From contig NC_092345.1 in NCBI RefSeq assembly GCF_963676685.1, forward strand, positions 24,862,001 through 24,926,000: 64,000 nt of DNA. Reading direction: 5' to 3'. Within the stretch, counting starts at the first letter, position 1. Each line of letters opens with the position of its first letter. Source of the DNA: Mytilus edulis. Taxonomy: Eukaryota. The position numbers and the translations under genes are program-made. Of this stretch, positions 5,773 to 59,109 are shown piece after piece. The notes under the pieces are model-generated. The model was not told where the DNA came from. It worked only from the letters and a program-made list of their open reading frames with translations, and did not search any database.

Positions 5773-5794
5773 ATGAATCCCATCAACATTAACG
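5773..5794 (+). CDS. Gene A (TM + B30.2/SPRY-like protein), predicted first coding exon MNPININ
   Basis: ATG AAT CCC ATC AAC ATT AAC G|GTTTGG gives a phase-1 donor that joins the phase-1 acceptor at 5962. The sequence is identical in the paralog (41644-41665). There is an in-frame upstream stop and a cagcag acceptor at ~5727. Confidence 0.6.
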
Positions 5795-5961
5795 GTTTGG
5801 CACTTATAAAACTTTTGGACAAATTGCACCTTTCAAAATCAAAATCAACAATTAGGCCTTAAGAAAAGAGATTTTATTTGTCAAAGATAAATTTTAGTAC
5901 AAAAGTAATGAACGAGTATTGTTAATTCATTATTTTACGTATATTGTATATTGATTTATAG

Positions 5962-6273
5962 ATGGCACAAGCAATGATCCAAATTCCATGGATCTAGGCT
6001 CCGATTTTTGTGGCAACGTTGAAGACTTAAGACAAGAAAATATTCTCCAGAGTTCAACTGCACAGGTTAAAAACGTAAATGAAAGCAGTCAAGAACCGTT
6101 GCAGTTATTTGCAAAACCAATCAGACCGAATACAAAATCTACGGCCATCAGAGATATATGTATAAGATTGAAAGAGCACAAGTGGTCCTTACTTGCATTT
6201 GTGTGTGGTGTTATCCTGACACTAGCGATAGTTGTCCCTGTGATGGTTGTGAACTGCTCATCTTCGGAAAAGG
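5962..6273 (+). CDS. Gene A exon 2: N-terminal tail, transmembrane helix (WSLLAFVCGVILTLAIVVPVMVV) and Cys-containing stalk
   Basis: Acceptor tttatag|AT and donor AAG G|GTATAC define a 312-nt phase 1-1 exon. It overlaps ORF 5988-6293 and has the same length and boundaries as in gene B. Confidence 0.85.
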
Positions 6274-8394
6274 GTATACTTTATTTCTGTTAATCTATTA
6301 TGATTGAGATTGGTCAAATAGTCATCAATGTGGAAAAAAACAACTTCAATTTTTTTTTATATTGACATTAAAGTTTTCAAAACTAAATCAAGTATTGCAG
6401 TTTCGAGGTCTCTTACTATATCTAAAAATAGTTTTTTGTGTGCAGACATAGTCCTTTCGTCACATTTTGACCGGAGTTACTAAACTCATATACCCCAGAA
6501 AATGCACTTTCCTTTTAAAACACGCATCTACTTATTTTAAAATCAATTTTATAACATCCTTTTGGCAAAGTATTATACTTAAGGGTGTTCGCTACTATAT
6601 TGTAGAATAACAAGCTTTTTAAAAGACTTTTATAGATTTATAATATAATTAAAGGAACTAAAAAGACAGAAATAAATGAATGATTCGTGCGCTTGTTTTG
6701 AAAATATAAGCTACTGAGAAACTTAGCTTAATTTGTACAAACGCACAAACTAAAAGTGATCAAGTACATTAAAGAAAAGTAAATAAAAACTCTCACTTCT
6801 ATGACAGTTGCATCAAATTCCGTTATATTTACAACGATGCGTGAACAAAACAGACGTAATAAACAAAAGTCAAAATATGGGTATAGCAGTCATCACCGTG
6901 TTACAATCTCAAAACAAACAATCATTTACTAAATTTAGTGCTATAAAACCAGGTTCAATCCACAATTTTCTACATCTGAAAATGCCTTTACCAAGTAAGG
7001 AATATGACAGTTGTTGTCCATTCGTTTGATGTGTTTTGTTATTTGATTTTGCAATTTGATAAAGGAATTTACGATTGTATTTTCCTCGGAGTTCAGTATT
7101 TTTGTGATTTTACTTTTTTTTACATTTACGTTGCAAAATGCATTTACCTTTAAAGGCACGTATCATTCTATCTTAGAATCAATTTGTACGACATAGTTGA
7201 CATAATACTATGCTTTCACAAGATGGAAACAAGATAACCTTCTAAACATCAACAGAAATTGAATAAAATTCGGTGGAATGTCCGGACGATACAATCATGG
7301 TTGCGTTCCGTTAAAAATGTCACTGTTATAAATTTACTGTTAATGGACGAACGTTCGGTTTTGTCGTGGCCTGTCGTGCAAAATGTCAAAAACATATTTC
7401 GAGTGGTCACATCAGCTACGACATGTCCACGATGGTTCCACGATGGGGACAAGACAGAAAAAAAATGTAATTGAACTGTCGTGGGTTTGTTGCAAGTCGG
7501 TCGTGTGACAGTCGTGCGATAACCGTACGACAATCGTGAGTTTTGAGTTCAGTATTTTTGTGATTTTACTTTTTACCAACCAACGTTGGGCGTTTCCCTG
7601 GTTCCTTTACTGTTCAAGGGCTAGAGTCAACGCTTTTAAACATCAATTCTCTGTAATAATAGACCAAATATGAAAAATTTTGGCCAGATTATTTGTTTTC
7701 GATTACTTTTTTTTTAAGTTGAAATGGTCCAAACTAACAGTCAAATTAAAAAAAATCAATAAAAAAAATCTGACTAGTCTGGTTGCCATGGAAACCACGT
7801 GACATCATATGCATATATTAGTATAGCAAGGAGAAATGGCTAACATTGTATTTTATGGTAAAAATGAGATAAAGCATTTCATTTTTTGTTATTTTCATGG
7901 GTATAAGAGAAGATTTCGATCATTTAAACTGCTAACTGACAAATTTGTCGAATAAAAACAGTTTTTTGGTACATAAGGTGGTCCACTTAACACAAAAATC
8001 GACATGATTTTTGCCGTTTTTTGTCATTTTTTACATCTGATTTTACCAAAAACGCAGAAATCCTCACATAAAAGACTATAAAATATAAAATTATGGATGT
8101 TTTGTCAACAAAAAGCTGCAAAAAAATTCTTGGGTAAATGTTGCAGAAAGTTGCCAATAGAGGAATATTAGTCATTGTAATTTACCCTGAAATTCCACCT
8201 TTTTTAGGTTCTATTTGTAAATAAATATTTCATATGAATATTTTCATGATAAAATAGTCCTTTCTTATGAAAACAACTATGTTTAGATGTATTGCGGGTA
8301 ATTGTATCATATTACATATTCCAGCAATTAAACATTTCATGCTCAAACTAATCTGGATGTAATTTCGAAAAATGAGTTATTTCCCTTTTTTGAA

Positions 8395-8968
8395 AGGAGT
8401 AGGTCCAGTAAGACCCCTTTTTGACCCCAAAATATAGCAGTTTTATCGGATTGTAAAAACTTTTAGTTATTTATTGGACAGTAGAATGCTTCTGCTACAT
8501 AAATATGGGCTGTTTTGGACAATACAATGCACATATATCGGGTACTAACACCATTAAGTCATGCTAAATTACTGAAATCTTCACAATTCTATCATTTTAG
8601 TTAAATTTTAGACGGTTTTCGTGTAAAACGAAAGTGGCCGCATTTGTGTTCATCCTTAATATTGAAATGTAAGCTGTATTTAATGATAATACATCACATA
8701 TATAAAGGTTGAGAATGAACACGGATGCGGCCACTTTCATTTTGGACAAAAACCATCCGAAAAGTGACATTTTTTGGCATATTTGGTAGATTTTTTCTAT
8801 TTGAGCTTGAATTGGATCGTTTTTAATGACTAAATCAGTTAAAATCTTTCACATAAACTAATTGATTCAAATGAAATAGACACTTAAGTGTTTAAAAAGG
8901 GGTCAAAATCTTTTGTCAAATGAGCCTGAAATTTGAGGCCAAAATCAGTCCTTACCGGACCTACTCCT
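8395..8968. mobile_element. MITE with terminal and internal inverted repeats
   Basis: AGGAGTAGGTCCAGTAAG ... CTTACCGGACCTACTCCT; internal IR aaagtggccgcat / atgcggccacttt. Confidence 0.8.
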
Positions 8969-9652
8969 TTTCGTTCAAGAGATAGAGAAAAAAAACTTTA
9001 GCAGCAATAATATTTAGGAGACAACTTGATTATACTATTTCTGGATCACTTTTCCTCACTAGACAGCTGTCGGCGGAAAGGAAATTAGCAAATGAAAAAA
9101 TTAATATTTTATCAAATTTAACCAACAACTTTAAAAAAAAATTATTAGAAAATAATTATTAGTTTTAAATTATAGGGTAGTTAATAATGTTGATATTATA
9201 ACTGCTTTGCAACAAAACATAAGTAAAAAAATATAACTATGTTTTATATATAAAATATATAACCGGTAAAATCACGGTTTCATACTAAAAATGTTCAAAG
9301 GCAAATCTCGTGAATCTTTCATATAAATACGGAGTACTTCAGCTATTTATTTTAATACTGCAATTACATACGTTTGAATATGAGCAAAAGAAAAAAATCG
9401 AATTTTACCAATGCAAAACTACAGTGCCCAGTTTCATCCTAAATGTAACAAAGAAGATGTGGTATGATTGCCAATGAGACAACTGTCCATAAGAGACCAG
9501 AAATAAAATCCCTAATAAATTATGTCATCTATATTAAAACGCATCAAATAATAGTTTAAATCTGTGTTAAAATCATTTTGTTATCACAAGTTATGGAACT
9601 GTTTACAAAGGAAATTTACTTATTTGATAAAAAAAAAAAAAAACAAAAAAAA

Positions 9653-11132
9653 AACAGATGCTCCGCAGGGCGCAGCTTTACACAACCGCATAGGCTGAAC
9701 CCTGAACGGTTGGGGCAAGTATGGACACAACATTCAAGCTGGATTCAGCTCTGGATTGCGATTAAATAGTTGACACAGCATAGGTTTCTGACACAGAATA
9801 AATGTGGTCTAATGAACTTTAAATACTTTTTTTTGCCTTTAAGCAATTCACTATGCTGTTGAAAATTTATCCTCTCAAAAAAATGTTTGAAGAAATTTTC
9901 CTTTTATTTATGAAATCTAAAATGAGAAAAATTGAACCCCCCTCCCCCCCCCCCCCAATTTTTTTTCACATCCCCCTTTCCCTTATTCCAAAACTGATCT
10001 CAATTCAAACTTCTAATGGAGTTTGCAACAATAACTATTCATTTAAATACATCATAAAATATTAAAATGTAAAAAAAGTGCTTGTTATCACTGAATGGTA
10101 AAGATTGTTTTAATTTATCAATTGGTAGTAAAAGTGAATATACATTGTATATTGTATAAAACAATGATTTAAGTTGATTCAACTACTATTCTGGACAAAG
10201 AATGATAACTCCAATTTAAAATTTCTTGCTATTGCACAATATTGTGCAATTAGATATTTCTTGCTATTGCGCAATACTGTGCAATTGAAAATACTTGCTA
10301 TTGTACAACACTGTGCAATTGAAGATTTCTTGCTATTGCGCAATACTGTGCAATTGAAAATTTCTTGCTATTGCACAATACTGTGCAATTGTAGATTTCT
10401 TGCTATTGCTGAATACTATGCAATTGAAAATTTCTTGCTATTGCACAATACTTAATATGATAATTTTGGATCCTGATTTGGATCAACTTGATAACTGGGC
10501 CCATAATCAAAAATCTAAGTACATGTTTAGATTCAGCATATCAAAGAAGCCCAAGAATTCAATTTTTTTTAAATCAAACTTAGTTTAATTTTGGACCCTT
10601 TGGACCTTAATGTAGACCAATTTGAAAACGGGACCAAAAATTAAGAATCTACATACACAGTTAGATTCGGCATATCAAAGAACCCCAATTATTCAATTTT
10701 TGATGAAATCAAACAAAGTTTAATTTTTGACCCTTTGGGCCCCTTATTCCTAAAATATTGAGACCAAAACTCCCAAAGTCAATTCCAACCTTCCTTTTAT
10801 GGTTATAAACCTTGTGTTTAAATTTCATAGATTTCTATTTACTTATACTAAAGTTATGGTGCGAAAACCAAGAAAAATGCTTATTTGGGCCCCTTTTTGG
10901 CCCCTTATTCCTAAACTGTTGCGACCTCAACTCATAAAATCAATCCAATCCTTCCTTTTGTGGTCATAAACCTTGTGTCAAAATTTCATAGATTTCTATT
11001 TACTTAAACTAAAGTTATAGTGCAAAAACCAAATGTCTTCGGACGACGACGATGACGTCGACGCAGACGACGACGCCAACGTGATACCAATGTACTACCA
11101 AAAAAATGTCAATTTTTGCGGTCGTATAAAAA
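9653..11132 (-). mobile_element. HINE/Helentron-like non-autonomous element with internal tandem repeats
   Basis: Subterminal IR (tttacacaaccgc / gcggtcgtataaa), (gac)n microsatellite, internal 35-bp and ~160-bp tandem repeats, inserted in an A-tract. Confidence 0.65.
10219..10451. repeat. 35-bp palindromic minisatellite, about 6.5 copies
   Basis: Unit aaaatttcttgctattgcacaatactgtgcaattg, head to tail, no spacers. Confidence 0.9.
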
Positions 11133-11458
11133 TGGAAAATGGTGTGAGCAAAAAATCAATTCTTAATTTTGTCTACTTTTGACTAGTGAAGTGTACAAAT
11201 TTTCAAATAAATATTTTAATTATTCTATAGAATCTCCCCCATTTTTAAATTGAATATTTTTTTATATTTTGTAATACCACAAAAACAAGTATGAGTAAAT
11301 TCTGTTTGTTAACTGCTAAATTACTTAATAAACTTACTTTATTTGAAAATTTATCAAAAGAATGTATATTTATACATGTAATATTAGAAATGTAATTAAG
11401 AAATTACTTTATATCCAGATTAAATCACCAAATATGCATAAATTCCAGAGTTTTGTTT

Positions 11459-12338
11459 TTGCCTAAAACCATGTTCGGCAATAGGGCGAATAATCATCAT
11501 CAGATTTCAGGAAATAAGCTGACAATTTCAGGCAATAACTTAATGCCTAGGCGTTAGCTTATTGCATAGAATTTAAGCTTAATGCCTAATTTCACTTATT
11601 GCCGCTAACATATATAACAACAACAACAACAAAAACACTCAAAAGAAAACACCAAAACCTTTTTTCTTTTAAAAATAATTAAAGTATGAATACTGTACGA
11701 AAGAACAACAGTAGCACTGTCACTGATACTTATTAAAATTAGCATCTGCCTAAAGTACACTTCATTCCAAAATTACGGTTTTTCAACAAAGATGTAGTAC
11801 TTTGTCCTCTAACCTTTACTTTAATTGAATTGAAGAAAAAAAATTACCAAGTTATATGTTCAGTTTTAATTCAAATGAGTTTTTACTTAATTACATGAAG
11901 AATACGTGTTTTGGTATTGCCTAAAACCATGTTCGGCAATAGGGCGAATAATCATCATCAGATTTCAGGAAATAAGCTGAAAATTTCAGGCAATAACTTA
12001 ATGCCTGGGCGTTAGCTTATTACCTAGGATTTAAGCTTAATGCCTAATTTCACTTATTGCCGCTAACATATATAACAACAACAAAAAAACACTCAAAAGA
12101 AAACACCAAAACATTTTTTTCTTTTAAAAATAATTAAAGTATGAATACAGTACGAAAGAACAACAGTAGCACTGCCACTGATACTTATTAAAATTAGCAT
12201 CTGCCTAAAGTACACTTCATTCCAAAATTACAGTTTTTCAACAAAGATGTAGTATTTTGTCCTCTAACCTTTACTTTAATTGAATTGAAGAAAACAAATT
12301 ACCAAGTTATATGTTCAGTTTTGATTCAAACGAGTTTT
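11459..12338. repeat. Two-copy tandem duplication, period ~458 bp
   Basis: gcctaaaaccatgttcggcaatagggcg at 11461 and 11919; high identity throughout. Confidence 0.9.
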
Positions 12339-12398
12339 TATGCCCTACCTACGATAGTAGAGGGGCATTATGTTTTCTGGTCTGTGCGTCCGTTCGTC

Positions 12399-12429
<31 letters not shown>

Positions 12430-12831
12430 TCGTTCGTCTGTTGGTTCGTCCGTCTGTCCCGCTTCAGGTTCAAGTTTTTGGTCAAGGTAGTTTTTGATGA
12501 AGTTGAAGTCCAATCAACTTGAAACTTAGTACACATGTTCCTTATGATATGATCTTTCTAATTTTAAAGCCAAATTAAACTTTTGACTCCAATTTCACGG
12601 TCAACTGAACATAGAAAATGAAAGTGCATGTTTCAGGTTAAAGTTTTTGGCCGAGGTAGTTTTTGATGAAGTTGAAGTCCAATCAACTTGAAACTTAGTA
12701 CACATGTTCCCTATGATATTATCTTTTTAATTTTAATGCCTTATTATATTTTTTATCCAATTTCACGGTCCATTGAACATGGAAAATGATAGTGCGAGTG
12801 GGGCATTCGTGTACTTTGGACACATTCTTGT
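12335..12831 (+). mobile_element. HINE/Helentron-like element (shorter relative at ~18855-19143)
   Basis: ttttatgccc...gggcat IR, (gtcy)n microsatellite, two ~180-bp core repeats, 3' hairpin gtgcgagtggggcattcgtgtac. Inserted in a T-run; the empty site is visible in the adjacent tandem unit (~11880). Confidence 0.75.
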
Positions 12832-13899
12832 TACTTAATTACTTGAAGAATACGCTGTAAAATAAATTGATTCTCTAAATCCACAATTTTTAAACATAAA
12901 ACCCAAATTTTCCATAAATATAATGAACTTAGTAATGAACCCATTTTGTTTATCTCTGTATTTAAAGAAAATCATTTGAAGCATCCATCCCAAAATTGTT
13001 TTATTTTAGTGCCTCTCTATTTCTTAATTTTTTGTGCAATTTTTTTTTTTTTTTTAAATATGTCACTACCCCCACCCCCTCTTTTTTTTAAGGTTTGCAT
13101 TAAGGTTTTTTATTGTCAACCATAGGTCAGTCATTTGAACAAACATATTCAACAAACACCAACATCAATATAACATGTTAGTTAGATTATATGGTGGAAA
13201 TTGTCTGGTATGATAGAAAACATATGAAAAATTAATCTACATGAAGAGTTTACACCCCTAATATGACCTAATTTGAATTATCCGCCATTGATTTAAAATA
13301 TATTTACCCAAAATAGTTTTTCATTAATGATTAGCTGAATACCTAATCTTTAAGTGTAGTGAGTCGTGTTTTGGCTATATTTCTGCGAAAAAAATATTTT
13401 AGGGACCAAATTTGGTCGAATTTTACTCTTTTTGCTTAAGACCCACAGTACCTGAAATAGCTATTAGCTCTGATATTCTATACTGTATTTCACCGTATAA
13501 GATTTACTTTAATAAATATATTTTTATAAAGCATATTCTGTTGTTCATTTAATGATAAACTTTTTAAAGCTATCTGCCATAATAAATGAGCTGTGCATAA
13601 TTGAAATTTGGTCATTTTGAGGTAAATTTTTCCTTGGTTGCTAAGGAAATTTATGTTCCTTGGCAACCGACAAGAAGGACTGGGATGATTAAGATTTTAA
13701 ACTGATTTTTATGAATAATGCAACTAACTTTGATGTTAGAGGTAGTTTTTCTATCACAATATTTTTTTTATGTGGCCAGCTGTTGGTTGATGCATACAGA
13801 GAATCGATGTTAAAGAACCATATTTTGCCCTTCTTGGAGTCCGGGAAGGCGCCTATTAAGCAAAGCTAACCAGAATCGTTCTGATGGAATAGCCATCCT

Positions 13900-14423
13900 C
13901 TTTTAACGGTAGACGGTATGTTTTTCCAAACATACATTCCCGCTGAATTGTATTCTTCTAAATCAAACGAAAATATGTTGGCCGACGAACGTACCACTGT
14001 CGTACGACAGACAATCAATGTTGTGCGAGCATTGTACGAAATTTGGTATTCGTGAGACAATCTGTATCTTCCGACAGTCGTGAGATTGTCGTACGACAGT
14101 CGTGTGACAATTGTTTGATTAAAATGGTTTATGTTGATACTCACGACAATGTGTTTATCGCACGACAGTCGCACGACGGTTGTAAATAAACTCATCATAG
14201 ACACTTTCACGAAGGCCACAAGACAGTGACAAGACACAAAATCGTAGAGCAAAAAGGTGCATGTCCAATTTTCGTCCCACAACACACGACAGCGCCACAA
14301 TACTCAAAATATCGTGCGACTGTCGTGCGATTATCGTACGACGACCACAGATGACCCGCGATTTGACCAAATGTCATGTCGTGGCGCTGCATAGATGTGT
14401 CGTGGGCTTGTTGTGACCAGGGC
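13900..14423. mobile_element. Right part of a Harbinger-like non-autonomous element (related segment at ~7250-7540)
   Basis: Dense gtcgt/acgac motifs ending ttgtgaccagggc|TAA. Confidence 0.5.
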
Positions 14424-15220
14424 TAAACTGAACACAGAAAGAGACTTGTTTTGTACGTTCATAAAATATAACATTGGAAGATATTTAAAAGTTATATATA
14501 CGATATCAATTTCGCTTCATAATAAAGACCGTATGGTGAGATATAGTATTTACATTATACAACGACGATATTAAGACTGGTTGATAGTTGCCTCATTAGT
14601 TATTAAGTCTCCTTATTTTAACCTCAATTACTATTTCAAATTTCTTTATATTTGGACTCTGTTAACAAAATAAAATTGACAAAAACATAAAACAAATCCT
14701 AAAGTCAAGGTACTATTTGAATTCGACTTACTTAGATAAGAAAACTCCAAGCAGTGAATATAAAAGAGGGACGAAAGATACCAAAGGGACAGTCAAACTC
14801 ATAAATCTAAAACAAACTGACAACGCCATGGCTAAAAATAAAAAAGACAAACAGAAAAACAATAGTACACACGACACAACATAGAAAACTAAAGAATAAA
14901 CAACACGAACCCCACCAAAAACTAGGGGTGATCTCAGGTGCTCCGGAAGGTATAACATTTTCCTAAGTCTAACTAATAATATCACGGAACAGAAAAATAA
15001 GTATGAAAGCTAATCTATAAATAGCAGGTGTCTGATCTTCAATAGAAACTGGAATCGAAGTTCATAGGATATATGCCTCAATTATAATAATCTAATACAT
15101 CTAAGACACGCCAACTGATCCTGGAACATGTACATATTTTTCCAAGACTCATTTCATTTAATTATCAAAGTTTTTTTTATTTTAAGTTTTTTTTTAGATT
15201 TGTTTATTGGTTTATTTTAG

Positions 15221-15879
15221 ATGATCAGGCTGGATATTTATTTACTTTGAAATTTGATAGAGAGTCGACTCATTCATCACTGTTCCTGTCTGATGATCAT
15301 ACAGTGCTGGGTAATTCATTCACTAAAGAAACACCGAATCCCGTGAATCATCCGAAACAGTTTAACACTTACATAGGAACAATAGGAGATAGATGCTTAA
15401 CTTCTACAAGTAAACTATACTTTGAGATTACGTTCTCGTACGAAATATTAGGGTGGATAAACTCAACAAACTTAGTCCTCGAAGTAGCAGTGGCTAGTCG
15501 TGAAAAATTAGACAGCCAACATTATGTCGGATACCACGGCTGGTCGTTTATTTTAAGCAATTGCAATACTAGCATTTGCCTTAAATCCACATCTGGTTCT
15601 ACGAAGACGGTTGAAAAAGTTAAGATAATAAGTAGCAGTAATACAGCCGGTACAGTGATCACAGGAAGACTTGGATTTTTTGTTAACATGGACCGTCATG
15701 AGTTTTCAGTTATTGACAAGGACAGTTCGAAAATCTTGTCAACGTTTACAAAGGTAGTGTCTGCTGATCAGCTTTGTCTAGCGTTTGGTATTTATAACCA
15801 CCAAATTCTTGAAACAAAACTGAAAATAATGTATTCTTACGATTTCAAAAATCTTCCAATTATCAATGTTGTTGCTTAG
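15221..15879 (+). CDS. Gene A terminal exon: B30.2/PRY-SPRY-like domain
   Basis: Phase-1 acceptor tttattttag|AT is in frame with ORF 15247-15879. Motifs LKFDRESTHSSLFLSDD (PRY-like LxLDxxTAHxxLxLSxD), GDRCLTSTSKLYFEI, GRLGFFVNMDRHEFSVID and TF...LCLAFGIY match the B30.2 pattern. Spliced CDS is 993 nt = 330 aa. Confidence 0.85.
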
Positions 15880-16009
15880 ATAATAGGGTTACTTATAGTG
15901 GGAACATTGTACCAAGCAGTTTGTTAGTATCTTAATACACTTACTCGAAAGTGTTATGTAACATACTGTGAGGGACAATAATCCTCTTTAATAGTGTAGT
16001 ATTTTAATC

Positions 16010-16849: not shown

Positions 16850-19454
16850 GCAAAGAGGGGGATATAGCAGATCGTTACCCAGAGAAAACATTGTCATCAG
16901 AGGTTAAAGTGAAGAGCAATGGGCTTACATCGTCGAAAATAACATTGGATTTTTCATCAAAATTCAAATGACAAACTTAAATATCTTTTACAATTGATAA
17001 TGTATCTTTAAATTCAAAATTTTATCCATCTCCATCCATGTCTTGTTTGATGTAATATTTCACAATCGTAATTGAAAAATCGTAAATGGCAAATTTCTAT
17101 GAAACTAGAGTAAGTATACTAAATATAGTGTCAAGGAACAGTTGATATATATTCTCATCAGAGAAATTATTTAGAAATAGCCAAACTTTAATAGTTTAAA
17201 TTCAAGGACCTTTTACAAATATCACTGCTTGAGAAATAAATATAGAGGAAAAAACACTTCATTTTACTGATTGTTCAAGTTATCTATCGATGATCTCTTT
17301 TCTTCTACTTAACATGATTCCAATGGAGAAACAAAATAACGTATTATAGTACACAATACTTAAAAAGCTCACTTAAACTTTAGACTTCATTCGTACCTAC
17401 AATTATAGTACTTCAAAACACAAAAGTTACTAAAACTGACAATGGAAATCACACAGCTGTTTCATTCTTGGCAAAACCCTACCTATAAGCAGCAAGTGCA
17501 TGATCAAGTACATTAAATAGCTATATATACTGCTCTTTGAAAAACTGAATATGCAGGCAATTTTAAGAAAACATTTGTATTTGTTTTGTTATTTTGTTAT
17601 TTCTACCTGTCAAATTAGAATTAAATGAAAATATTTCGTTACATTTGTGTTTTGTTGATCTAGTCCTTTCTCACAATAGTATTTTAGAAGATGGCTTTTG
17701 TCGGGAACCCTTTTAAGATGTTGAAGTATGTCTGCTTTGAATCAAAATACAAAATATATTACTAGAGATGTTTAATTGCTTTACTTTTGGGCAATGGTAT
17801 AGACATATACAAGGTATAAACGTCAATTTAAAACATCTGAGGAATTCAAAACTTTACATACGAAAGCACCTTCGACGAAGATCTTTTAATTTAAAGTTGT
17901 CCGTCTCAGTGAACTTTAAAGTCTAAAAAGAGGCTGCCTTTCTAGGTTATTTAGTTTCATTTATGTCGAATATACACGATTCAAATATATGATAAAAATA
18001 ATTATAATTCAACATTAATATATTTATCCACACACTATCAATCAAGAAAGCCATCTGTGTGTTAAACGTTAAACATAACCAACTCGGGGGAAACAAATGT
18101 CTCTCAAAAAGTTAAACAGTTGTTCAAACTAAATTTTTTTGTTGTACAAAATACATTTGAGATCTCATTCACAAATTGTATTTTCAAATCTCTGTTTGCA
18201 GAAAAATGTCAATTAAAAATATAAAAAAGAAGTTGTGGTATAATTGCCAATGAGACAACTCTCAACAAGACACACAAAAAAATTAACAACCATACGTCAC
18301 CGTACGGCCTTCAACAATGAGCATAGCCCATATCGCATAGTCAGCTATAAAAGGCCTTGAAATGAAAAATGTAAAACAATTCAAACGAGAACACTAACTG
18401 CCTTATTTATACACAAAAAAAAAGTTGATCTTCCGATTGAGCAGACATAGTATTGTAGTAGATTTGAAGTTTTTTGGCTATTTAAGATTGTGATCAGGAA
18501 AATAGGTAGACACATTGGCACTGCTATAACATTTACATATAATATCAACAAATGCAATGAACTTCATCTTGCATTCAATACAGCTTGTAAATAGATTTCT
18601 TTAAATACACCAAATTTGCAAATGGGTGAGGAAATTGACACATCGAACTACGTTGACATACTTACAATTTCGATGACAATGAGACATACAAAGAAATTTT
18701 AAAAAAAAACTCAGAACCTTGAATCCAAATTTCGTTTTTTAAACATCTGAAAATTATAAATTTTATACAGAAAACAAAAACAGTTCAGGTTGTTATAATT
18801 AAGATGCACCTCAAAAATTGTTTATTCCAAAGATACAAATATTTAAACAAATACGGTTATTATTCCCCATTTCTGGGCATTATGTTTTGTAGCATGTACG
18901 TCTGTCCGTTCATGCGTTAGTCCGTCCATCCGTTTTTCCCGTTTCAGGTTAAAGGTTTTGGTCGAGGTGGTTTTTAATGAAGTTGAAGTCCAATCAACTT
19001 GAAACTTAGTACACATCTTTCCTATGATATGATATCTCTAATTTAATGTCAAATTAGAGATGTCCCCCCATTTGCACGGTCCACTGAACAAAGAAAATGA
19101 TAGTGCGGATGGCAGATCCGTGTCCTGCGGATATATTCTTGTTTTTTTTAATAAAATAGAAGCACTTTTTGATGAGTAACTATAAAATCTCCGAGGAAAC
19201 GATCATTTTCGATTGCCTTTCATTGTTGAAAGATTACGATTATCAAACCATAGATAAGGAGTTTTGGAAATTGTATATTGTTATTCTACATTTTTGTTTT
19301 CTTATTATTTTTATTAATCTTCTTCAACAGATTTTGACCAGCTAGTTCCCGGAATTAAATGGGCCAATGTTGATGGAACTCTACTTTAAGGAGAATCCCC
19401 ATGTGAAGTTGTGCATCTTGCTAAATAATGGTCCGAAATTGCCATCATTTCCAT
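16850..19454 (+). pseudogene. Possible heavily decayed LRR/Toll-like receptor remnant
   Basis: Scattered LRR-like peptides in shifting frames (LQNTKVTK, EKLNM, GNPF, VLNVKHNQLG, ELHLAFN, KLRTLNPNF) and a TM-like run KEFWKLYIVILHFCFLIIFINLL near 19260-19330. Many stops; interrupted by repeats. Confidence 0.3.
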
Positions 19455-19699
19455 GCAGTAATACAGCCGGTACACTTGTCATAGGAAGACTTGGGTTTTT
19501 TGTTAACATGAATCGCAATGAGTTTTCCGTTATTAACAAGGACAGTTCGAAAATATTGTTCACGTTTATGAAAGTAGTATCCGCTGATCAGCTTTGTCTA
19601 GCGTTTGGTGTTTATAATCCTAAAAGATTTGAAACAAAACTGGAAGTTATGTATGCGTATGATTTCACAAATCTTCCAATTTTCAATGTGGTTGCTTAG
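19455..19699 (+). pseudogene. Orphan 3' third of a SPRY exon (fourth family member, 5'-truncated)
   Basis: SNTAGTLVIGRLGFFVNMNRNEFSVINKDSSKILFTF...NLPIFNVVA* aligns with the C-termini of genes A and B. Homology begins abruptly at gcagtaatacagccgg. Confidence 0.85.
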
Positions 19700-19804
19700 A
19701 TTTTTTGTTTGGAAAACACAGTTTGACCAATGTTCAACCAGCTATATTTAAAACACAATTATAATTATAGGGTCATTACACTAATAGTTATTCTTCTTTT
19801 GTGT

Positions 19805-22564: not shown

Positions 22565-22566
<2 letters not shown>

Positions 22567-41643: not shown

Positions 41644-41665
41644 ATGAATCCCATCAACATTAACG
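41644..41665 (+). CDS. Gene B predicted first coding exon MNPININ
   Basis: Identical to 5773-5794, including the G|GTTTGG donor; joins 43692 in frame. Confidence 0.6.
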
Positions 41666-43691: not shown

Positions 43692-44003
43692 ATGGCTTAA
43701 ACGATGATCGAAATTCCATGGATGGAGCCTCCGATGATTATGACAACGTTAAAGACTTAAGACAAGATAATAATCTCCAAAGTTCAACTGCACAGGTTAA
43801 AAACGTAAATGAAAGCCGTCAAGAACCGTTGCAGTTATTTGCACAACCAATCAGACCGAATACAAAATCTAGGGCCATCAGAGATATATGTATAAGATTG
43901 AAAGAGCACAAGTGGTCCTTACTTGCATTTGTGTGTGGTGTTATCCTGACACTAGCGATAGTGGTCCCTGTGATGTTTGTGAAATGCTCGTCTTCGGAAA
44001 AGG
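43692..44003 (+). CDS. Gene B exon 2: N-terminal tail with DDYDNV motif, transmembrane helix and stalk
   Basis: tttatag|AT acceptor and AAG G|GTATAT donor; 312 nt; about 84% aa identical to gene A exon 2 (17 of 104 differ by manual count). Confidence 0.85.
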
Positions 44004-45308
44004 GTATATATATATCTTATTTCTGTTTATCTATTATGATTGAGATTTGTCAAATAGTCATCGACGTGGAAAAAAAAACTATACATTTTTTTTTAATATT
44101 GACATAAAAGTTTTCAAAACTCAATCATGTGTTGCAGTTTCGAGGTCTCTTACTATATCTAAAAAATGTTTTTGTGTGCACACATAGTTCTATCGTTACA
44201 TTTTGACAGGAGTTACTAAATTCATATACCCCAGAAAATGCACTTTCCTTTTAAAACACGCATACTTATTTCAAAATCAATTTTATAACATCCTTTTTGC
44301 AAAGTATTATACTTAAGGGTGTTCGCTACTATATTTTAGAATAACAAGACGTTTAAAAATTTTTTGTTAATTTATAATATAATTAAAAGAACTAAAGAGA
44401 CAGAAATAAATTAATGGTCCGTGAACTTTTTTACAAGACATTAGCTTTTGCAAATTTGGCGGGAAATAATTCTCTCTAGGCATTCCATAAGTTTATCATT
44501 GTAACCCTTTTTCTATTAAAAAAAACAAGAATTGTCTAGCTTTTTTCAAACATGGCTATTTGAATTATATGCTATTAAATTCTGGAAAGAAAAGTAGGAG
44601 TAAGCGGTGAAATATTTGTTATGGCTATACATGGATAAAACTAGATGATACCAAATAACTGGCAAAAAGTCAATAATAAGAGGAGCAAACATCCTTTAAC
44701 AAGATAAACACATGATAACGGTCCATAATTCAACAGAAATTAAATCGGGCATCTTTTAATATATTTGTGAAATGACCGAAAACGATAAGCATTGTTAAAT
44801 ATGTCCTCGTTATAAATTTAAAGTTTTGTGAAAAAAAATGACAAATCTAGCTTTTTTTATTTACTTTACTCATATATGATGAAGTGTCTGTAGGAAAAAC
44901 TAAGCTTGATTTGTACAAACGCACAAGTTTACAGTGGAAGACATTTTAAAAGAAGTATTAATGTGCAACTTGTCAATATCTAAATTAGCAAATACATGAA
45001 ATATGTAAAGCTTCTTTCAAAAAGAGTATGCGGTGAAATATAGTTTGCATTTACGTAACGTGGTCTGCTGGAAGTTGTCTCATTAGCATTCATTCATAGT
45101 GCACTCATATTACAAACAAACAAAAATTCTAACTTCAAATTTCTTCATAGGCAATCAGAAAGACAATTTTAAAGTCAAGGTACTTCTTGAACTTAACTGG
45201 ATGAAACTATTCCAACTTTACTTATAACTTACTTAAGCTAAAAGATGACATCACTAGGATGTTACGTCAAATTGTAAATGTATTATTGATTATATGAGTT
45301 TGTTTCAG

Positions 45309-45967
45309 ATAACCAGGCTGGGTACATATTTTCGTTGAGATTTGACAGGAAATCGACTCATTCAGTAGTTTTCTTGTCTGATGATAATAAAGTATTGAGT
45401 AATTCTTTCACAAAAGAAACCCCGAATCTCGTAAATCATCCGGAACAGTTTAACACTTACAAAGGAACAATAGGAGATAGATGCTTAACTTCTACCAGTA
45501 AAATATACTTTGAGATCATGTTCTCGTTTGAATTATTTAAGTCTTTGAACAGCACAACTTTGGTCGTCGAGGTAGGAGTAGCCAGTCGTGAAAAAACAGA
45601 TACTGAATACCATGTCGGACAACACGGATGGTCATTTGCAATACATAATTGCAATACTGTCATATGCCTTACAGCCAATCATTTTGATGCAAATACAGAT
45701 AAAGAGATTAAAGTAATAAGTAGCAGTAATACAGCCGGTACACTTGTCTCTGGAAGACTCGGATTCTTTGTTAACATGAAACGCAATGAATTTTCCGTTA
45801 TTGACAAGGACAGTTCAAAAATATTGTTCACGTTTACAAAATTAGTGTCAGCTGACCAGCTTTGTCTAACTTTTGGTGTTTATAACCCTCATTTACTGGA
45901 ATCTAAACTGGAAATAATATACTCGTATGATTTTACAAATCTTCCACTCATGAATGTTGTTGCTTAG
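45309..45967 (+). CDS. Gene B terminal exon: B30.2/PRY-SPRY-like domain
   Basis: tgtttcag|AT phase-1 acceptor in frame with ORF 45335-45967. Colinear with gene A exon 3 without indels, about 70% aa identity; AATAAA at 46139. Confidence 0.85.
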
Positions 45968-46176
45968 CAAATTTTTGGGAAATGGTTAGACCAAAAGAAT
46001 ATCATATCACATAAGTCAAAATGATATACGGCAAAGTGATTTACAAATTTTTGATTACTCATAGTGAGGAACTCTATTTTAAGCAGTATACTGATTGCAT
46101 TATGCAAGTGCTTGCAAGTGTACTTGCAAGTGTGATTTAATAAACTGCGGAGGACATTATGTTATAGACATATAAT

Positions 46177-46322
46177 GCCTATTATAAGGTTTTTCTTGTC
46201 GGAGAACACTACGAGGACCGAGGGGTGTCAGGATCGATCAAATGAAAGACCGACCGTACTTTCTTTTTGGCAATCCTGACACCCAATGTGTGTTCTACGA
46301 AAAGAAAAACCTTAAAATATGC
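46177..46322. repeat. ~145-bp imperfect palindrome (foldback/MITE remnant) just downstream of gene B
   Basis: taaggtttttcttgtcggagaacac..gggtgtcaggat / atcctgacaccc..gtgttctacgaaaagaaaaacctta. Confidence 0.75.
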
Positions 46323-52128: not shown

Positions 52129-52316
52129 AATCATGCCAGTACTGAAGTACTGACTAATGTCCTGAATGGTCGAAATGATTTAAGACCGCAGGGGAAACTA
52201 ATAAGGAAGTTTATAGCTTAAACCTATATTAAGAGTGATAATTATATTACTTTAAATGTTTAAGATGTTTCTGTAGTGCTCAGTGGTCGGACTTGTCTAA
52301 CTTAATTATTCTCTTA

Positions 52317-55300
52317 GGTAGCAATACACAGTTAGGAGTTTAGTTTCGCATTTTGGCCCCTGTGGATTTTTAAAATAGGAAAGTTATTGTGTAATAAAAT
52401 TCATTTTTAGACAGATGAGTGCTAATTTAGCCTTCAAAGATGGTTTATAAGTTCATCAAGATTATTTTTTACATGTTTTATGGGCTGTTTTCTGTTTGAC
52501 AATCCGTATTTTCATAGCTAGACCGGCCATCAGTCCAGAAATTACTGTACTGTTTACAAACACTCTTTTTCTACGCGAAGTTTTTGACGCAATTTTACAA
52601 AAAAATGAGATGAAAGACATATGATTATCATTGGATTTGCTGAATGATATATGTACACAGTTTCAGAAAAGGTATTACTTCAAGCGATTGAAATTCTACT
52701 TTTAGCCAAATTGTGGGGAAATATATGACATCTTTCCCCCCCCCCCCCTTTTTGCAATATTTTATAACAAATAAATGCAGATTGTTGCCATGGATACACC
52801 AAAAAGAAATTATATTTTTCCATTTTATATACTGGATATAAAATCTATGGAAGATTCTGATTACATACATATGCCCATATATAACACAAACAGTAAGCTT
52901 GATATTGCAAGAAAGCAATGAAAAGGGGATGGTAAAATTCATAAGGGCAAATTTTAGTATTTTTTCCTAACTGTTTATTGCTACCTTATGGCATACTTAC
53001 CAAGCTCAGAATTGTATAATTTAAGACTTTTCATGCCACAAATCTATTGATATTTAGATTCTTAATCAATTTCTGAGTAAATTGAGTGTTTAAGAATGAC
53101 AATATATGTCAATTTTATTGTTTACAGTCCTTAGCAACCAAAATTAGACATTTTGACACAAGGCTTATATTTGTACTCTATCGGCTTAACTTTTGCTTCT
53201 GATGGATTGGGCTGCATGTAGTAGCCTAAGTATTGAACGCGTTGGGTTTTTTCTTGCGAATATATCAAATTATTGTTTTTATCAAGATTTCATGTTACAT
53301 TTTGGCATATATTAAATGTATAGTTAAATCAGATGTAAGAAATTGATTCCCTATCACCAAGTTTTTTAATCAAGTCTTTGGTATGCAATAAGCATAAAGA
53401 TTAACATTTTTATGCTTGAAATTGCTAAATTTTATACAATGTTGCATCATCAGAGACCTTATTAAGATATTCAACATTAAAAAACTGACAAAAGAGGTAC
53501 AGTTTTTAAGATTTGGCTAAAAATTGAGGTAGAGACAAGATTTACACTTTGACTTGGCACCTTTCTTTAAAATCAGTTTTTGTCGCGTTTCAGTGTCAAC
53601 TGCTAACCTTCATAAAATATTCATTACTCAACCAATTTTCAAAAATAAAAGGCCATTTTACTCGTATTAGCTAGCAGAACTCAGAAAATAAGTTAAAAGG
53701 GAGAATTTGAAAAAAATATTTACTATTAAGGTAGCAATACACAGTTAGGAGTTTAGTTTCGCATTTTGGCCCCTGTGGATTTTTAAAATAGGAAAGTTAT
53801 TGTGTAATAAAATTCATTTTTAGACAGATGAGTGCTAATTTAGCCTTCAAAGATGGTTTATAAGTTCATCAAGATTATTTTTTACATGTTTTATGGGCTG
53901 TTTTCTGTTTGACAATCCGTATTTTCATAGCTAGACCGGCCATCAGTCCAGAAATTACTGTACTGTTTACAAACACTCTTTTTCTACGCGAAGTTTTTGA
54001 CGCAATTTTACAAAAAAATGAGATGAAAGACATATGATTATCATTGGATTTGCTGAATGATATATGTACACAGTTTCAGAAAAGGTATTACTTCAAGCGA
54101 TTGAAATTCTACTTTTAGCCAAATTGTGGGGAAATATATGACATCTTTCCCCCCCCCCCTTTTTGCAATATTTTATAACAAATAAATGCAGATTGTTGCC
54201 ATGGATACACCAAAAAGAAATTATATTTTTCCATTTTATATACTGGATATAAAATCTATGGAAGATTCTGATTACATACATATGCCCATATATAACACAA
54301 ACAGTAAGCTTGATATTGCAAGAAAGCAATGAAAAGGGGATGGTAAAATTCATAAGGGCAAATTTTAGTATTTTTTCCTAACTGTTTATTGCTACCTTAT
54401 GGCATACTTACCAAGCTCAGAATTGTATAATTTAAGACTTTTCATGCCACAAATCTATTGATATTTAGATTCTTAATCAATTTCTGAGTAAATTGAGTGT
54501 TTAAGAATGACAATATATGTCAATTTTATTGTTTACAGTCCTTAGCAACCAAAATTAGACATTTTGACACAAGGCTTATATTTGTACTCTATCGGCTTAA
54601 CTTTTGCTTCTGATGGATTGGGCTGCATGTAGTAGCCTAAGTATTGAACGCGTTGGGTTTTTTCTTGCGAATATATCAAATTATTGTTTTTATCAAGATT
54701 TCATGTTACATTTTGGCATATATTAAATGTATAGTTAAATCAGATGTAAGAAATTGATTCCCTATCACCAAGTTTTTTAATCAAGTCTTTGGTATGCAAT
54801 AAGCATAAAGATTAACATTTTTATGCTTGAAATTGCTAAATTTTATACAATGTTGCATCATCAGAGACCTTATTAAGATATTCAACATTAAAAAACTGAC
54901 AAAAGAGGTACAGTTTTTAAGATTTGGCTAAAAATTGAGGTAGAGACAAGATTTACACTTTGACTTGGCACCTTTCTTTAAAATCAGTTTTTGTCGCGTT
55001 TCAGTGTCAACTGCTAACCTTCATAAAATATTCATTACTCAACCAATTTTCAAAAATAAAAGGCCATTTTACTCGTATTAGCTAGCAGAACTCAGAAAAT
55101 AAGTTAAAAGGGAGAATTTGAAAAAAATATTTACTATTAAGGTAGCAATACACAGTTAGGAGTTTAGTTTCGCATTTTGGCCCCTGTGGATTTTTAAAAT
55201 AGGAAAGTTATTGTGTAATAAAATTCATTTTTAGACAGATGAGTGCTAATTTAGCCTTCAAAGATGGTTTATAAGTTCATCAAGATTATTTTTTACATGT

Positions 55301-55803
55301 TTTATGGGCTGTTTTCTGTTTGACAATCCGTATTTTCATAGCTAGACCGGCCATCAGTCCAGAAATTACTGTACTGTTTACAAACACTCTTTTTCTACGC
55401 GAAGTTTTTGACGCAATTTTACAAAAAAATGAGATGAAAGACATATGATTATCATTGGATTTGCTGAATGATATATGTACACAGTTTCAGAAAAGGTATT
55501 ACTTCAAGCGATTGAAATTCTACTTTTAGCCAAATTGTGGGGAAATATATGACATCTTTCCCCCCCTTTTTGCAATATTTTATAACAAATAAATGCAGAT
55601 TGTTGCCATGGATACACCAAAAAGAAATTATATTTTTCCATTTTATATACTGGATATAAAATCTATGGAAGATTCTGATTACATACATATGCCCAGATAT
55701 AACACAAACAGTAAGCTTGATATTGCAAGAAAGCAATGAAAAGGGGATGGTAAAATTCATAAGGGCAAATTTTAGTATTTTTTCCTAACTGTTTATTGCT
55801 ACC
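52317..55803. repeat. Near-perfect tandem array MITE-spacer-MITE-spacer-MITE (period ~1412 bp)
   Basis: MITE copies at 52317-52985, 53730-54396 and 55141-55803, with TIR GGTAGCAATAMACAGTTAGGA and TTAA-like flanks. The differences noticed are poly-C length (13/11/7) and one SNP. Confidence 0.9.
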
Positions 55804-58800
55804 TTAACTGTTTAATATTTGGTCTATATTACATGTAGAAACATTTAATTAATTACCAATGCGTGATTGCTTTCATCTTTCTAACTCGTCAATTATATAA
55901 CGGGTTTAGCTAAAGTTCATAAGTATGTTATGTGTGTTCGATTCCTTTCACCATTAGGCCTTTGATTTGTAAACTTGTTTTTTTTATACATTTCGTGAAA
56001 TTCAAATAAGTTCTTTTTCAATTTAATTTATTTCTGTAAAATTTGAGGCAATCTTTGTGTGTGATTGGAGTGATTTTCTTTGAGCAATCTGAGGTAAAGG
56101 TACACATTTAATATAATTTTAATACATTTGCACATTTTTACTTAGTGTGAATTCGCATGAGAGGAGGTGTATTATAAGAGAGATACTCGTGCCCTGTCTG
56201 TTCTCCTGGATTTGCTCTTTTTGAAGTTCCAGCGATTTTCTCAGATTTTTGTTTTTTGCTATGATATTTGTTATCAAAGTAACAAGGATTATAGTTTAAT
56301 ACGCCAGACGCACGTTTCGTCTACATAAGACTCATCACTGACGCGCAGATAAAAATAGTTCTAAAGCCAAACAAGTACAAAGTAGAGGAGCATTAAGGAC
56401 CCGAAATTCCAAAAAGTTGTGTCATACGGCTCATGTAATCTATTCCTAGGAGAAGAAAATCCTTAGTCTTTCGAAAAATTCAAAATTTTGTAACAGGAAA
56501 TTTATAAAAATGACCATATAATTGATATTCATGTCAACACCGAAGTGCTGACTACTGGGCTGATTATACCCTCGGTGACGAAACGTCCATAAGCAGTGAC
56601 ATCGACCCAGTGCTGAAATTATTATTAAAGAAGGACGAAAGATACCAGAGGGGCAGTCAAACTCATAAATCGAAAATAAACTGACAACACCATGGGTAAA
56701 ATGAAAAGGACAAACAGACAAACAATAGTACACATGATTCTTCATAAAAAAATAAAGAACAAACAACACGAACCCTACCAAAATCTAGGGGTGATCTCAG
56801 GTACTCCGGAAGGATAAGCATATCCTGCTCCACATGTGGCACCCGTCGTGTTGCTTATGAGATATCAAATCCGGTAAATAGTCTAATTCGGTAGGTCACA
56901 TTTATAAAAGGTACCAGGATTATAATTTAATACGCCAGACGCGCGTTTCGTCTACATAAGATTCATCAGAGACGCTCAGATCAAAATAGTTATAAAGCCA
57001 AACAAGTACATTAAACAGGATCGTCTGTGTAAACTATTGTCACCTTAAATAAAGGGGCATTACATGTAGCAGGGGCTTAGACAAAGCATTAACATTTGAT
57101 TGTTTTTATTGAAATATTTGTAAAATAGGAATTTTGAATAAAGATTTCGCTAAAGTCAATTTGTCAAAATAAACTCTATATATAGCTGGTGTATTATTTT
57201 AAAAGTCAATGAATCAGTATCCACGAGTCTTGCAATGACATTGTGCATGATTTTGTTTTGATCAATTTTGTTTTATCATAAAAATTAAAACGTGGACACG
57301 TCTTTTCGATTAAAATATAGTGATTTCTGGTTGAATTCATCACAATAGATAAGAAATTCATAAAAAATCGGAACCGATATTTAGAATACTTAAACTTTTA
57401 CACTTAAGTATCCCATATTTACGTTAAAACGTAATGTCCAACGTTAAATCTTTTGTAATAAAGATCGGAGTTCCGTTTCTTTCATTCTATATTTTTTCTC
57501 CGATCGTCTGAAAACCTCATAAGAGTATTGCTATTACGTATTGGTACTACGCTTATAACTGCAAAATCAATATTACTAAAACTGTAAACCGGAAAATTAC
57601 ATTTTTGAAACCGGTTATAAAAATGTCCAAGCATATGCAAGGTAAACATATATCGTGTTTGTTCATTTATATTGTGAAATTGGAAATGCTGATAGGAAAA
57701 ATATTTTTGATATTAAAATGTCTTTGTTCATGATAATTTTTGGCCGGAAACCATGTGCATAGTTTTCATTTCACTGAATTCAAAAAATATATCCATCTTG
57801 TCACTACGAAAAATAAACTATATTGTCATAATATGATTACAAGTGAGGTTTTAATCGGCTTTTTATCTTATTAGAATGCAGATACGTTACGTATGTAATG
57901 AGCCTGTGTAGATATAAAAAAAAACAATAATGTCAAAATCGTAAAACGATTGGACATGTTTTTCTTTTGTTTATGTAAATAAGCATGTAGAATCTACGAT
58001 TCATGAACATCTTGTATCATTTCTGTAATAGACACGGAATATTTATTTATTAAGTCTAGGAACTTTCCAATGCACTTTAGAAAAAAAAACAGATGTTTCT
58101 TGACAAACCCTTGCTCATTATGTTTTTACTCAGACACTGATGACGTTTTACACAAGTATGAGTAGAATAAACGTAGTAAATTCAAGCTCTTAAATATCGT
58201 AGGTGTCGTAAAACGCATTTTTCGTACGTGAGGAATATTATATTGGTGCTAAGGTGAGAAAAAATATGATTTCGAATTTAATTCGTCTCGTTGGTAATAA
58301 GTGTGGTTATTGCGATGAACCTTATTGTAAAATTCGAGTTGAATATCAAGAAATTATGCGGAGGGGGCTATATTTGTGGTTTCATAATACTATTGTTTGG
58401 CATGATATATTAATAGTACCCAATCAGGGAAGTTTGGATTGTTAATGGAAGGAACGTCATTAATATATCTGTATGTTAAATTTTAAAAACATCTATTTGT
58501 TCTTTTTGTTTTTACAAGTGTATGATGGACTTAGACTGATATGAACATTAGAAAAAGGTCTACCAGGAGAAGTGAATAGTTTGAATCCATGGTTCTTTAA
58601 TTTAAGTATACTTACAATTACATGACCATGTTTCTTGCTTTTATGGGGTCTCTTTGTACCGCCTGACTCAGAATATTTAGGTGCATTCCTACGTGTTACT
58701 TATTCTTCAGTCTATTGTTTGTCCGTTTGTCTTCTTTCATTTTTAGCCATTGCGTTGTCAGTTTATTTTCGATTTATGAATTTGACTGTCCTTCTTGTAT

Positions 58801-58960
58801 CTTTCGTCCCTCTTTTTTTGTGACGATTGACGTAATTAAAACTAACAACATACAGTTTAACTTAGTATTCTTTCAGAATCAATGATAAATTTCTGTGTAA
58901 AAAGTATGTACCAACATTCCATATTTTTTTATTCGTGTATTGCTTATTTTACTTCTGCAG

Positions 58961-59109
58961 ATGGACTCAGAAAAAGAACCTGTGTCTACCAGTGACATGT
59001 TGATTAGAATAAAGCAGCATAAGTGGTCAATACTTGCTTTTATATGTGGTGTAGTCTTGGCATTAGGTATTTGTTCCAGTGATGGTATCAAAATCTTCTC
59101 CGGGAAAGG
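58961..59109 (+). pseudogene. Gene C: diverged paralogous TM exon with an apparent frameshift; its SPRY exon was not found in the window
   Basis: ttctgcag|ATG...IRIKQHKWSILAFICGVVLALGI matches IRLKEHKWSLLAFVCGVILTLAI. After ~59070 homology (VPVMV-SKSSPGK G|GTATA) continues in a shifted frame. Confidence 0.7.

Follow-up and report, generated by a model that had tools for sequence, protein, structure and literature searches.

Two intact paralogous genes, A and B, both on the + strand, were found in a window of 64,000 nucleotides (nt) of Mytilus edulis DNA (contig NC_092345.1, positions 24,862,001 to 24,926,000; G+C content 31%, no N). Each gene ends in a single exon for a divergent B30.2 (PRY/SPRY) domain. 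The best explanation is that both genes are transcribed and belong to a family of single-pass membrane proteins that is specific to Mytilus and has been amplified in tandem. The proposed layout comprises a disordered, acidic N-terminal tail of about 65-80 amino acids (aa) with a basic juxtamembrane end, a 22-residue signal-anchor helix, a stalk of about 10 residues and the one-exon B30.2 domain. The proteins would be of type II, with the tail in the cytosol and the B30.2 domain in the lumen or at the cell surface. There the domain could bind proteins or ligands as a module facing outward, with paralog-specific recognition by its variable loops, and the tail may serve in trafficking or signalling.

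Gene models, transcripts and the C-terminal domain

An earlier reading of the window (the original prediction) had described two genes of the 330-aa type, each with a transmembrane (TM) exon and a single SPRY exon. Open reading frames (ORFs), tblastn, canonical splice sites and the database entries P0001 and P0008 all agree with this description (Table 1). The tblastn matches of the exon peptides spanned 5988-6272 and 15223-15876 for gene A, and 43718-44002 and 45311-45964 for gene B. In both genes the junction between the TM exon and the SPRY exon is canonical (donors GTATAC and GTATAT, acceptors TTTTAG and TTTCAG) and of phase 1, with the codon GAT. Over the SPRY exon, gene B matches the 330-aa NCBI M. 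edulis protein P0001 with 100% identity. The counterpart of gene A is the NCBI M. edulis model P0008 (314 aa), to which the gene A exon 5962-6273 is identical, and the SPRY-exon proteins of A and B share 70% identity. The full-length proteins analysed were these two database entries, and the window exons were searched separately. Close relatives were found in M. edulis, M. galloprovincialis, M. trossulus, M. coruscus and M. californianus, with intact reading frames in all five species; they are annotated only as uncharacterised, 'B30.2/SPRY domain-containing' or 'Transmembrane protein'.

The first coding exon had to be revised. The original prediction had placed it, with the peptide MNPININ, at 5773-5794 in gene A and at 41644-41665 in gene B. 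These sites carry a weak donor, GTTTGG, and had zero RNA depth in all four RNA runs analysed, the region without depth around the gene B site being 41564-41727. The MNPININ mini-exon was also rejected on account of its peptide, which differs from the N-termini of the database entries and orthologues (M[KR][EK]S...): P0001 starts MRESYINN, and the orthologues start MKKSN..., MTKSN... or MKESN.... Copies of an exon encoding MRESYIN or MKESYIN are located at 610, 30570 and 30678, each with a consensus GTAAGT donor. The exon at 610-631 is homologous to the first exon of P0001 and to the N-termini of P0006, P0012, P0013 and P0015, and is probably the one used by gene A. In gene B, a tandem duplication of about 108 bp (30512-30727) holds the first exon twice (ATG...AACA/GTAAGT at 30570 and 30678); gene A has a single copy. 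Because the rejected and the corrected first exons are both 22 nt long, the 330-aa length claimed originally is unchanged. The gene spans, about 15.3 kb each (A 610-15879, B 30570-45967), become longer than previously described because the first coding exon lies far upstream.

The four RNA runs were aligned to 41400-46300, the gene B region. Contigs of X1, X3 and X10 (a PacBio transcript library), which stem from three studies, join 44002/3 to 45308/9 and skip 1305 nt bounded by GT..AG. The question raised with the original prediction, whether the TM and SPRY exons are joined in RNA, is thereby answered. The RNA contigs of gene B extend past the stop codon to at least 46300. The match of the X10 contig (record 12) begins exactly at 43692, the predicted acceptor. 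A further 41 letters of this contig lie 5' of that position and place nowhere in 41400-46300.

Two other features were seen in the RNA data. One X3 contig keeps 60 nt of intron (43632-43691) upstream of the tail exon, has A for G at 43691 in the acceptor AG, and is joined on the opposite strand to 41782. It may represent an allele without the acceptor, or else a chimeric or DNA-derived contig. An interspersed repeat at 42712-43367 in the gene B intron, present also at 1074-1479 and 31408-31668, was covered very deeply in every RNA set, with a maximum of about 11,000 in X3. The depth has sharp edges at 42800 and 43206-43208, and reads enter many different flanks. The repeat looks like an abundant transcribed mobile element.

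The B30.2 nature of the C-terminal exon, as proposed in the original prediction, was reached in Pfam at sub-threshold level only. The window proteins scored 19-21 bits for PRY, below the curated cutoff of 27.5, and gave no match to SPRY (PF00622), and a phmmer search of the SPRY exon alone against PDB sequences returned only BTN3 at an E-value of 1.6. Against 1.84 billion representative proteins, phmmer found only 78 relatives. From these an alignment of 50 sequences, A3, was made and used for a family profile and for AlphaFold2 modelling of the domain alone. The profile matched the B30.2 domain of MID1 over its full length at an E-value of 1.2e-8, and also MID2, TRIM21, BTN3A1, TRIM25 and stonustoxin, the last at 5e-4. 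The model had a predicted local distance difference test score (pLDDT) of 94 and a predicted TM-score (pTM) of 0.90, with 12 strands, and forms a two-sheet beta-sandwich of about 200 residues with PRY and SPRY parts. Foldseek returned at least 500 matches at E<=0.001; among the matches listed, all were B30.2/PRY-SPRY-containing structures with a probability of 1.0. Stonustoxin was the top match, together with TRIM25, TRIM16L, TRIM21, TRIM7, TRIM65 and BTN3A, at TM-scores of 0.6-0.77. The sequence identity to butyrophilins is only about 15-17%. An AlphaFold run on full-length P0001 with a shallow, Mytilus-only alignment gave a pLDDT of 57.8 and left the PRY part unmodelled; it was not used for the fold search. 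Judged by the family profile and the modelled structure, the assignment of the exon as a true, though divergent, B30.2 domain is secure.

Membrane topology and its alternatives

P0001 has one hydrophobic segment, residues 84-102, with a Kyte-Doolittle value of 2.8 over 19 aa. Its N-terminus is hydrophilic and therefore provides no signal peptide. In the AlphaFold model of the full-length protein, residues 69-102 form a helix and the tail is disordered. A Pfam scan of P0001 revealed no RING, B-box, coiled coil or Ig domain. The protein thus has a single hydrophobic helix and no cleavable signal peptide, as is characteristic of a signal anchor, and the original prediction was right about the single helix as well as about the missing signal peptide and domains. 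Membership in the TRIM/RBCC proteins is contradicted by the lack of RING, B-box and coiled coil, and by an RNA contig with only 41 letters 5' of the tail exon. The butyrophilins are likewise a poor fit, given the hydrophilic N-terminus and the lack of an Ig domain.

According to the positive-inside, or charge-difference, rule, the more positive flank of a membrane helix stays inside. Over 15 residues on each side, the net charge ranges from +1 to +4 on the N-terminal flank and from -3 to +2, mostly zero or negative, on the C-terminal flank in all of the approximately 24 TM-bearing members. The N-terminal flank is the more positive one in every TM member, and the relatives with a TM helix followed by TSP1, which serve as a positive control, show the same bias. 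The rule therefore predicts N-in/C-out, and the flank-charge argument first made for the window proteins holds throughout the TM-bearing members.

A second line of evidence comes from the domain architecture of the relatives. In P0045 the TM helix occupies residues 76-94, a TSP_1 domain recognised by Pfam 115-161 and the B30.2 domain 161-370; in P0046 the corresponding elements lie at 229-247, 276-316 and 327-537, and the layout of P0050 is similar to both. In P0110, a TM helix at 191-209 is followed by two TSP_1 domains (E-value 1e-13) and B30.2 at 340-554. P0048 combines a hydrophobic, signal-peptide-like N-terminus, read from its sequence, with two TSP_1 domains and B30.2. In P0037, the outgroup closest to the family (43% identity), a TM helix is followed by a sub-threshold TSR-like segment of the form WSxWSxW and by B30.2. 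In P0164 of the ark clam Tegillarca, found separately and standing outside the tree described below, a very basic tail and a TM helix precede a Sushi domain and the start of a truncated B30.2. TSP1 and Sushi are extracellular modules. Their position between the TM helix and B30.2 therefore means that these relatives must be type II proteins with an outward B30.2 domain.

In a domain tree of 76 rows, a branch with a Shimodaira-Hasegawa-like approximate likelihood ratio test (SH-aLRT) value of 99 joins the window family with all five TM-TSP1 proteins, P0048, P0051 (TM helix only) and P0071 (weak PAN-like N-terminus). No RING/B-box protein of the 76 rows falls inside this clade. The clade members with known context are all membrane-anchored or secreted; the others are single-exon ORFs of metagenome contigs, without context. 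The cysteines give a further marker. Four conserved cysteines had been claimed originally, but several members have Y or W instead of C170. The pair C170/C297 nevertheless stood up as a mark of proteins without RING or B-box: it covaries, it occurs only in such proteins, and every tree row that carries it lies inside the TM/secreted clade. In TRIM-like relatives the two positions are occupied by P/S/G/A and W/Y/F. Flank charges, the architectures of the relatives, the clade and the C170/C297 pair thus all support the N-in/C-out arrangement with an outward B30.2 domain that the original prediction had suggested. We consider this topology probable for the window family, arguing mainly from the charge bias and the architectures of its nearest relatives.

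Other features that had been cited as signs of an ectodomain fared less well. The stalk cysteine is confined to genes A and B with their alleles and is not a family-wide feature, and the NST sequon thought to be conserved occurs in only part of the family. The C226/C231 pair was rejected as a marker of an ectodomain disulfide, being common to RING/B-box relatives. Sequon enrichment was rejected as topology evidence, since it is uninformative or slightly contrary.

Several observations weigh against the type II reading. The loss of C170 in some members means that a C170-C297 disulfide would not be universal, and C226/C231, although it also covaries, is found in cytosolic TRIM-like relatives with RING/B-box. 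The B30.2 domains of the family are depleted of sequons (2.0 per domain compared with 3.45 by shuffling), whereas those of the TSP1-bearing and secreted relatives are enriched (5.0 compared with 3.6), and the N-tail itself carries one to three recurrent sequons (NES, NTS). The window family has no diagnostic extracellular module of its own, and the tree was made by a quick method. The raw-read run X21, sampled at about 6%, had zero reads on the exons and is uninformative on transcript ends; expression is therefore restricted or low, not ubiquitous.

Within type II topology, the B30.2 domain need not be that of a surface receptor. It could instead reside in the lumen of an organelle (ER, Golgi or granule) or be shed as a soluble factor, a refinement of the type II reading that is counted inside it and that we regard as rather unlikely. 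The sequence has nothing to tell plasma membrane from organelle residence, and a location at the surface rather than in an organelle lumen is speculative, as is a role in recognition or immunity. In favour of this refinement are the short, Ser-rich stalk, the existence of secreted PRY-SPRY proteins (stonustoxin, the top fold match, and vespryn/ohanin) and that of anchorless relatives with a hydrophobic, signal-peptide-like N-terminus (P0048 and P0052). However, no cleavage motif was identified in the family, and both the basic juxtamembrane helix and the conservation of tail segments speak for a protein that stays in the membrane.

The opposite orientation is modelled by the yeast protein Ssh4, which has a lumenal N-terminus of 46 residues, one TM helix and a cytosolic region with SPRY (PMC7759299). 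This same linear order with a cytosolic SPRY domain also counts against type II topology. In a mussel protein of the Ssh4/Ear1 kind the N-tail would be lumenal or extracellular, perhaps glycosylated at NES/NTS, and the B30.2 domain would be cytosolic, as in almost all known SPRY proteins, and serve as an adaptor or sensor anchored in the membrane, recruiting for instance a ligase or signalling partner. The recurrent sequons and net acidity of the tail, the sequon depletion in B30.2 and the many RING/B-box TRIM-like proteins among the wider relatives of the domain would suit such an orientation. Yet the charge bias is opposite to N-out in all members and no PPxY is visible on reading the family sequences, which sets them apart from Ssh4/Ear1-type proteins. 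Moreover, the family groups apart from its TRIM-like relatives and with proteins in which B30.2 comes after TSP1 on the non-cytosolic side, and the C170/C297 pair is absent from the cytosolic relatives. We therefore judge an Ssh4-like orientation unlikely.

Two variations were observed in the tail. The acidic tyrosine motif DDYDNV, encoded at 43733-43750 in gene B and found in several orthologues, is replaced by DFCGNV in gene A (6003-6020) and by DYCDNV in many other members. If the tail is cytosolic, DDYDNV could be a phosphotyrosine or sorting motif in some paralogs only. P0002, from another M. edulis assembly and 96% identical to gene B as an allele or assembly variant, has about 30 tail residues (approximately 46-76) in a different frame and returns to the frame of P0001 before the juxtamembrane RLKEHKW. 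Either the middle of the tail is tolerant to such change or that assembly contains paired indel errors.

The gene cluster and its evolution

The window is part of a cluster of about 307 kb, in which a search of the species' own genome found at least 12 copies on both strands. Twelve full-length SPRY exons with at least 69% identity lie between 24.707 and 24.948 Mb on C2, the contig that holds the window, and two of them have an in-frame stop. One copy of 52% identity and several fragments complete the cluster, and three further copies are located on C11. More distant clusters with 31-44% identity, on C9, C7 and C3, are probably the TSP1-bearing subfamilies. The features within the window are listed in Table 1. 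Both partial copies named in the original prediction, a SPRY end at 19424-19696 and the exon-1 relic at 58961-59109, are present.

Table 1. Exons of genes A and B and further family-related features in the window
Feature	Position	Strand	Basis and remarks
Gene A, probable first coding exon, MKESYIN, phase 1	610-631	+	Six-frame motif search; donor GTAAGT
Gene A, exon for tail, TM helix and short stalk	5962-6273 (in-frame ATG 5988)	+	ORF, tblastn; acceptor TTTATAG, donor GTATAC
Gene A, B30.2 (PRY/SPRY) exon, whole domain and stop codon	15221-15879	+	ORF, tblastn, weak Pfam PRY match
SPRY-exon relic, C-terminal 91 aa, upstream half absent	19424-19699	+	tblastn 72.5% identity, residues 128-218; blastn 84-85% to both intact exons
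Weak SPRY-like relic of 34 aa, low confidence	27679-27780	+	tblastn 44% identity, E-value 6e-4
Gene B, first coding exon, MRESYIN, two copies	30570-30591 and 30678-30699	+	Start of P0001, MRESYINN; either copy fits
Gene B, exon for tail, TM helix and stalk	43692-44003 (in-frame ATG 43718)	+	ORF, tblastn, RNA contigs of X1, X3 and X10
Gene B, B30.2 exon with stop codon	45309-45967	+	RNA joint, AlphaFold, Foldseek; 3' untranslated region to at least 46300
Disrupted exon 1 of short-tail type, donor retained	58961-59109	+	+1 frameshift inside TM helix; tblastn match 58994-59071, ORF list, three-frame translation
3' end of a further full-length SPRY exon, running past the window	63952-64000	-	tblastn; own-genome match 24925952-24926605 (-), 69% identity, no stops

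In pairwise comparisons among the 12 paralogous SPRY exons, omega, the ratio of nonsynonymous to synonymous substitution rates, had a median of 0.31 and a range of 0.21-0.46 at a synonymous divergence (dS) of 0.52. The cluster is under purifying selection. Pervasive positive selection was not seen in this range of omega, the only rise being a local one to 0.8 at domain residues 111-130. The variability is focused at domain residues of about 65-85 and 100-135, where local omega reaches up to 0.8 and which are mostly loops in the model. That the copies are decaying duplicates or annotation artefacts without function is highly improbable and largely refuted: although relics or disrupted copies (19424-19699 and 58961-59109) adjoin the intact genes, an in-frame stop interrupts two of the 12 full-length exons and the domain stays below the Pfam threshold, the RNA is spliced in three studies, the median omega is 0.31 at a dS of 0.52, frames are intact in five Mytilus species and the fold prediction is of high confidence.

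Genes A and B are not equally similar along their length. The tail/TM exon and flanking intron (5934-6712 and 43664-44446) are about 90-94% identical, whereas the SPRY exons (15200-15879 and 45286-45967) are only 79% identical and have unalignable flanks. The 5' similarity together with the divergent SPRY exons therefore indicates a mosaic history of the two genes. This suggests gene conversion or unequal exchange confined to their 5' part. Between the two copies of exon 1, 13 of the 18 nucleotide differences change an amino acid, mostly in the tail.

Two elements elsewhere in the window were also recorded. A tandem repeat at 52316-55806 has a period of about 1.41 kb and about 2.5 copies that are 99.0-99.7% identical, with duplicated minus-strand ORFs of 102-104 aa. 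An ORF of 113 aa is located at 38552-38893; its C-terminal part may resemble the N-terminal region of piggyBac-type transposases.

Comparison with known systems and significance

Among the nearest relatives are the TM-TSP1-B30.2 and TSP1-B30.2 proteins of bivalves (P0045, P0046, P0110 and P0048), Mytilus entries of the same SH-aLRT 99 clade with 31-43% identity. They share with the window family the C170/C297 pair and the B30.2 domain as one C-terminal unit, and several have the same tail/anchor layout and charge bias. They and the Sushi-bearing protein differ in carrying an extracellular spacer, and the window family, which has none, looks like a minimal form without TSP1 or Sushi. The literature searched contained no experimental study of bivalve TM-TSP1-, TSP1- or TM-Sushi-B30.2 proteins. 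Outside the TM/secreted clade, the nearest sequence relatives are bivalve TRIM-like proteins with RING, B-box, coiled coil (in some with filamin) and B30.2, at E-values of 1e-31 to 1e-7. These share C226/C231, but have cytosolic E3-ligase architectures, no TM helix and no C170/C297. The domain probably originated from them: it appears to derive from bivalve TRIM-type B30.2 domains moved into secretory-pathway contexts.

The butyrophilins, BTNL proteins and ERMAP of vertebrates are also single-pass proteins with PRY/SPRY C-terminal to the TM helix, and the B30.2 domain of BTN3A is among both the fold and the profile matches. They are, however, type I proteins with a signal peptide, Ig ectodomains and a cytosolic B30.2, whereas the mussel proteins lack the first two and their B30.2 is predicted to be outside. 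Ssh4 and Ear1, membrane-anchored Rsp5 adaptors, resemble the mussel proteins in the short N-terminal segment, the single TM helix, the SPRY domain and the lack of RING or Ig. They differ in the lumenal N-terminus, the cytosolic SPRY and the PPxY, the mussel proteins having the opposite charge bias and no PPxY, and no sequence relationship between the mussel family and Ssh4/Ear1 was detected beyond the fold class. The C-terminal domain of stonustoxin/neoverrucotoxin, the nematode SPRYSEC proteins and vespryn/ohanin, described in the snake venom literature as secreted PRY-SPRY proteins, demonstrate that the B30.2 fold tolerates the secretory route or can work outside the cell. These are, however, soluble toxins or effectors of unrelated lineages and have no TM helix.

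In layout, the mussel proteins recall the C-type-lectin-like receptors of the natural killer (NK) complex and the ligands of the TNF superfamily. Both are type II proteins with a cytosolic N-tail, a signal anchor, a short stalk and a beta-rich, globular C-terminal binding domain, and their genes are clustered. Tandem clusters, paralog diversity and, in genes A and B, a stalk cysteine are points of likeness. The binding domain is a C-type-lectin-like or a TNF homology domain in these proteins and B30.2 in the mussel family, so that this is an analogy only, with no homology.

B30.2/SPRY is a main intracellular recognition fold of animal innate immunity, as in TRIM5, TRIM21, pyrin and the BTN3A1 tail. 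Apart from a small number of secreted toxins and effectors, it has to our knowledge not been recognised as a domain that binds ligands at the cell surface. In the full-text literature we found no description of a membrane receptor with extracellular SPRY/B30.2, of a type II SPRY receptor or of this mussel family. We place the family within a known class of domain proteins, as a form that is new in architecture and topology.

Bivalves have no adaptive immunity and show large lineage-specific gene expansions. We tentatively suggest that pteriomorph bivalves may have relocated B30.2 from the cytosol to the cell exterior and multiplied it there in type II surface receptors with TSP1, Sushi or no spacer, and that the Mytilus cluster of at least 12 genes, with its variable B30.2 loops, would be a germline-encoded repertoire directed at microbes, self/non-self or gametes, following a genomic and architectural logic like that of the NK complex. 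We consider this less likely than not. If the mussel family and its TSP1- and Sushi-bearing relatives do face outward, they would represent a new class of invertebrate surface receptors. They would also exemplify clearly the passage of a domain from the cytosol to the secretory pathway by exon shuffling, a mode suggested because the B30.2 domain is a single phase-1 exon, and they would offer candidates that can be tested for the recognition repertoire of bivalves, which is poorly understood.

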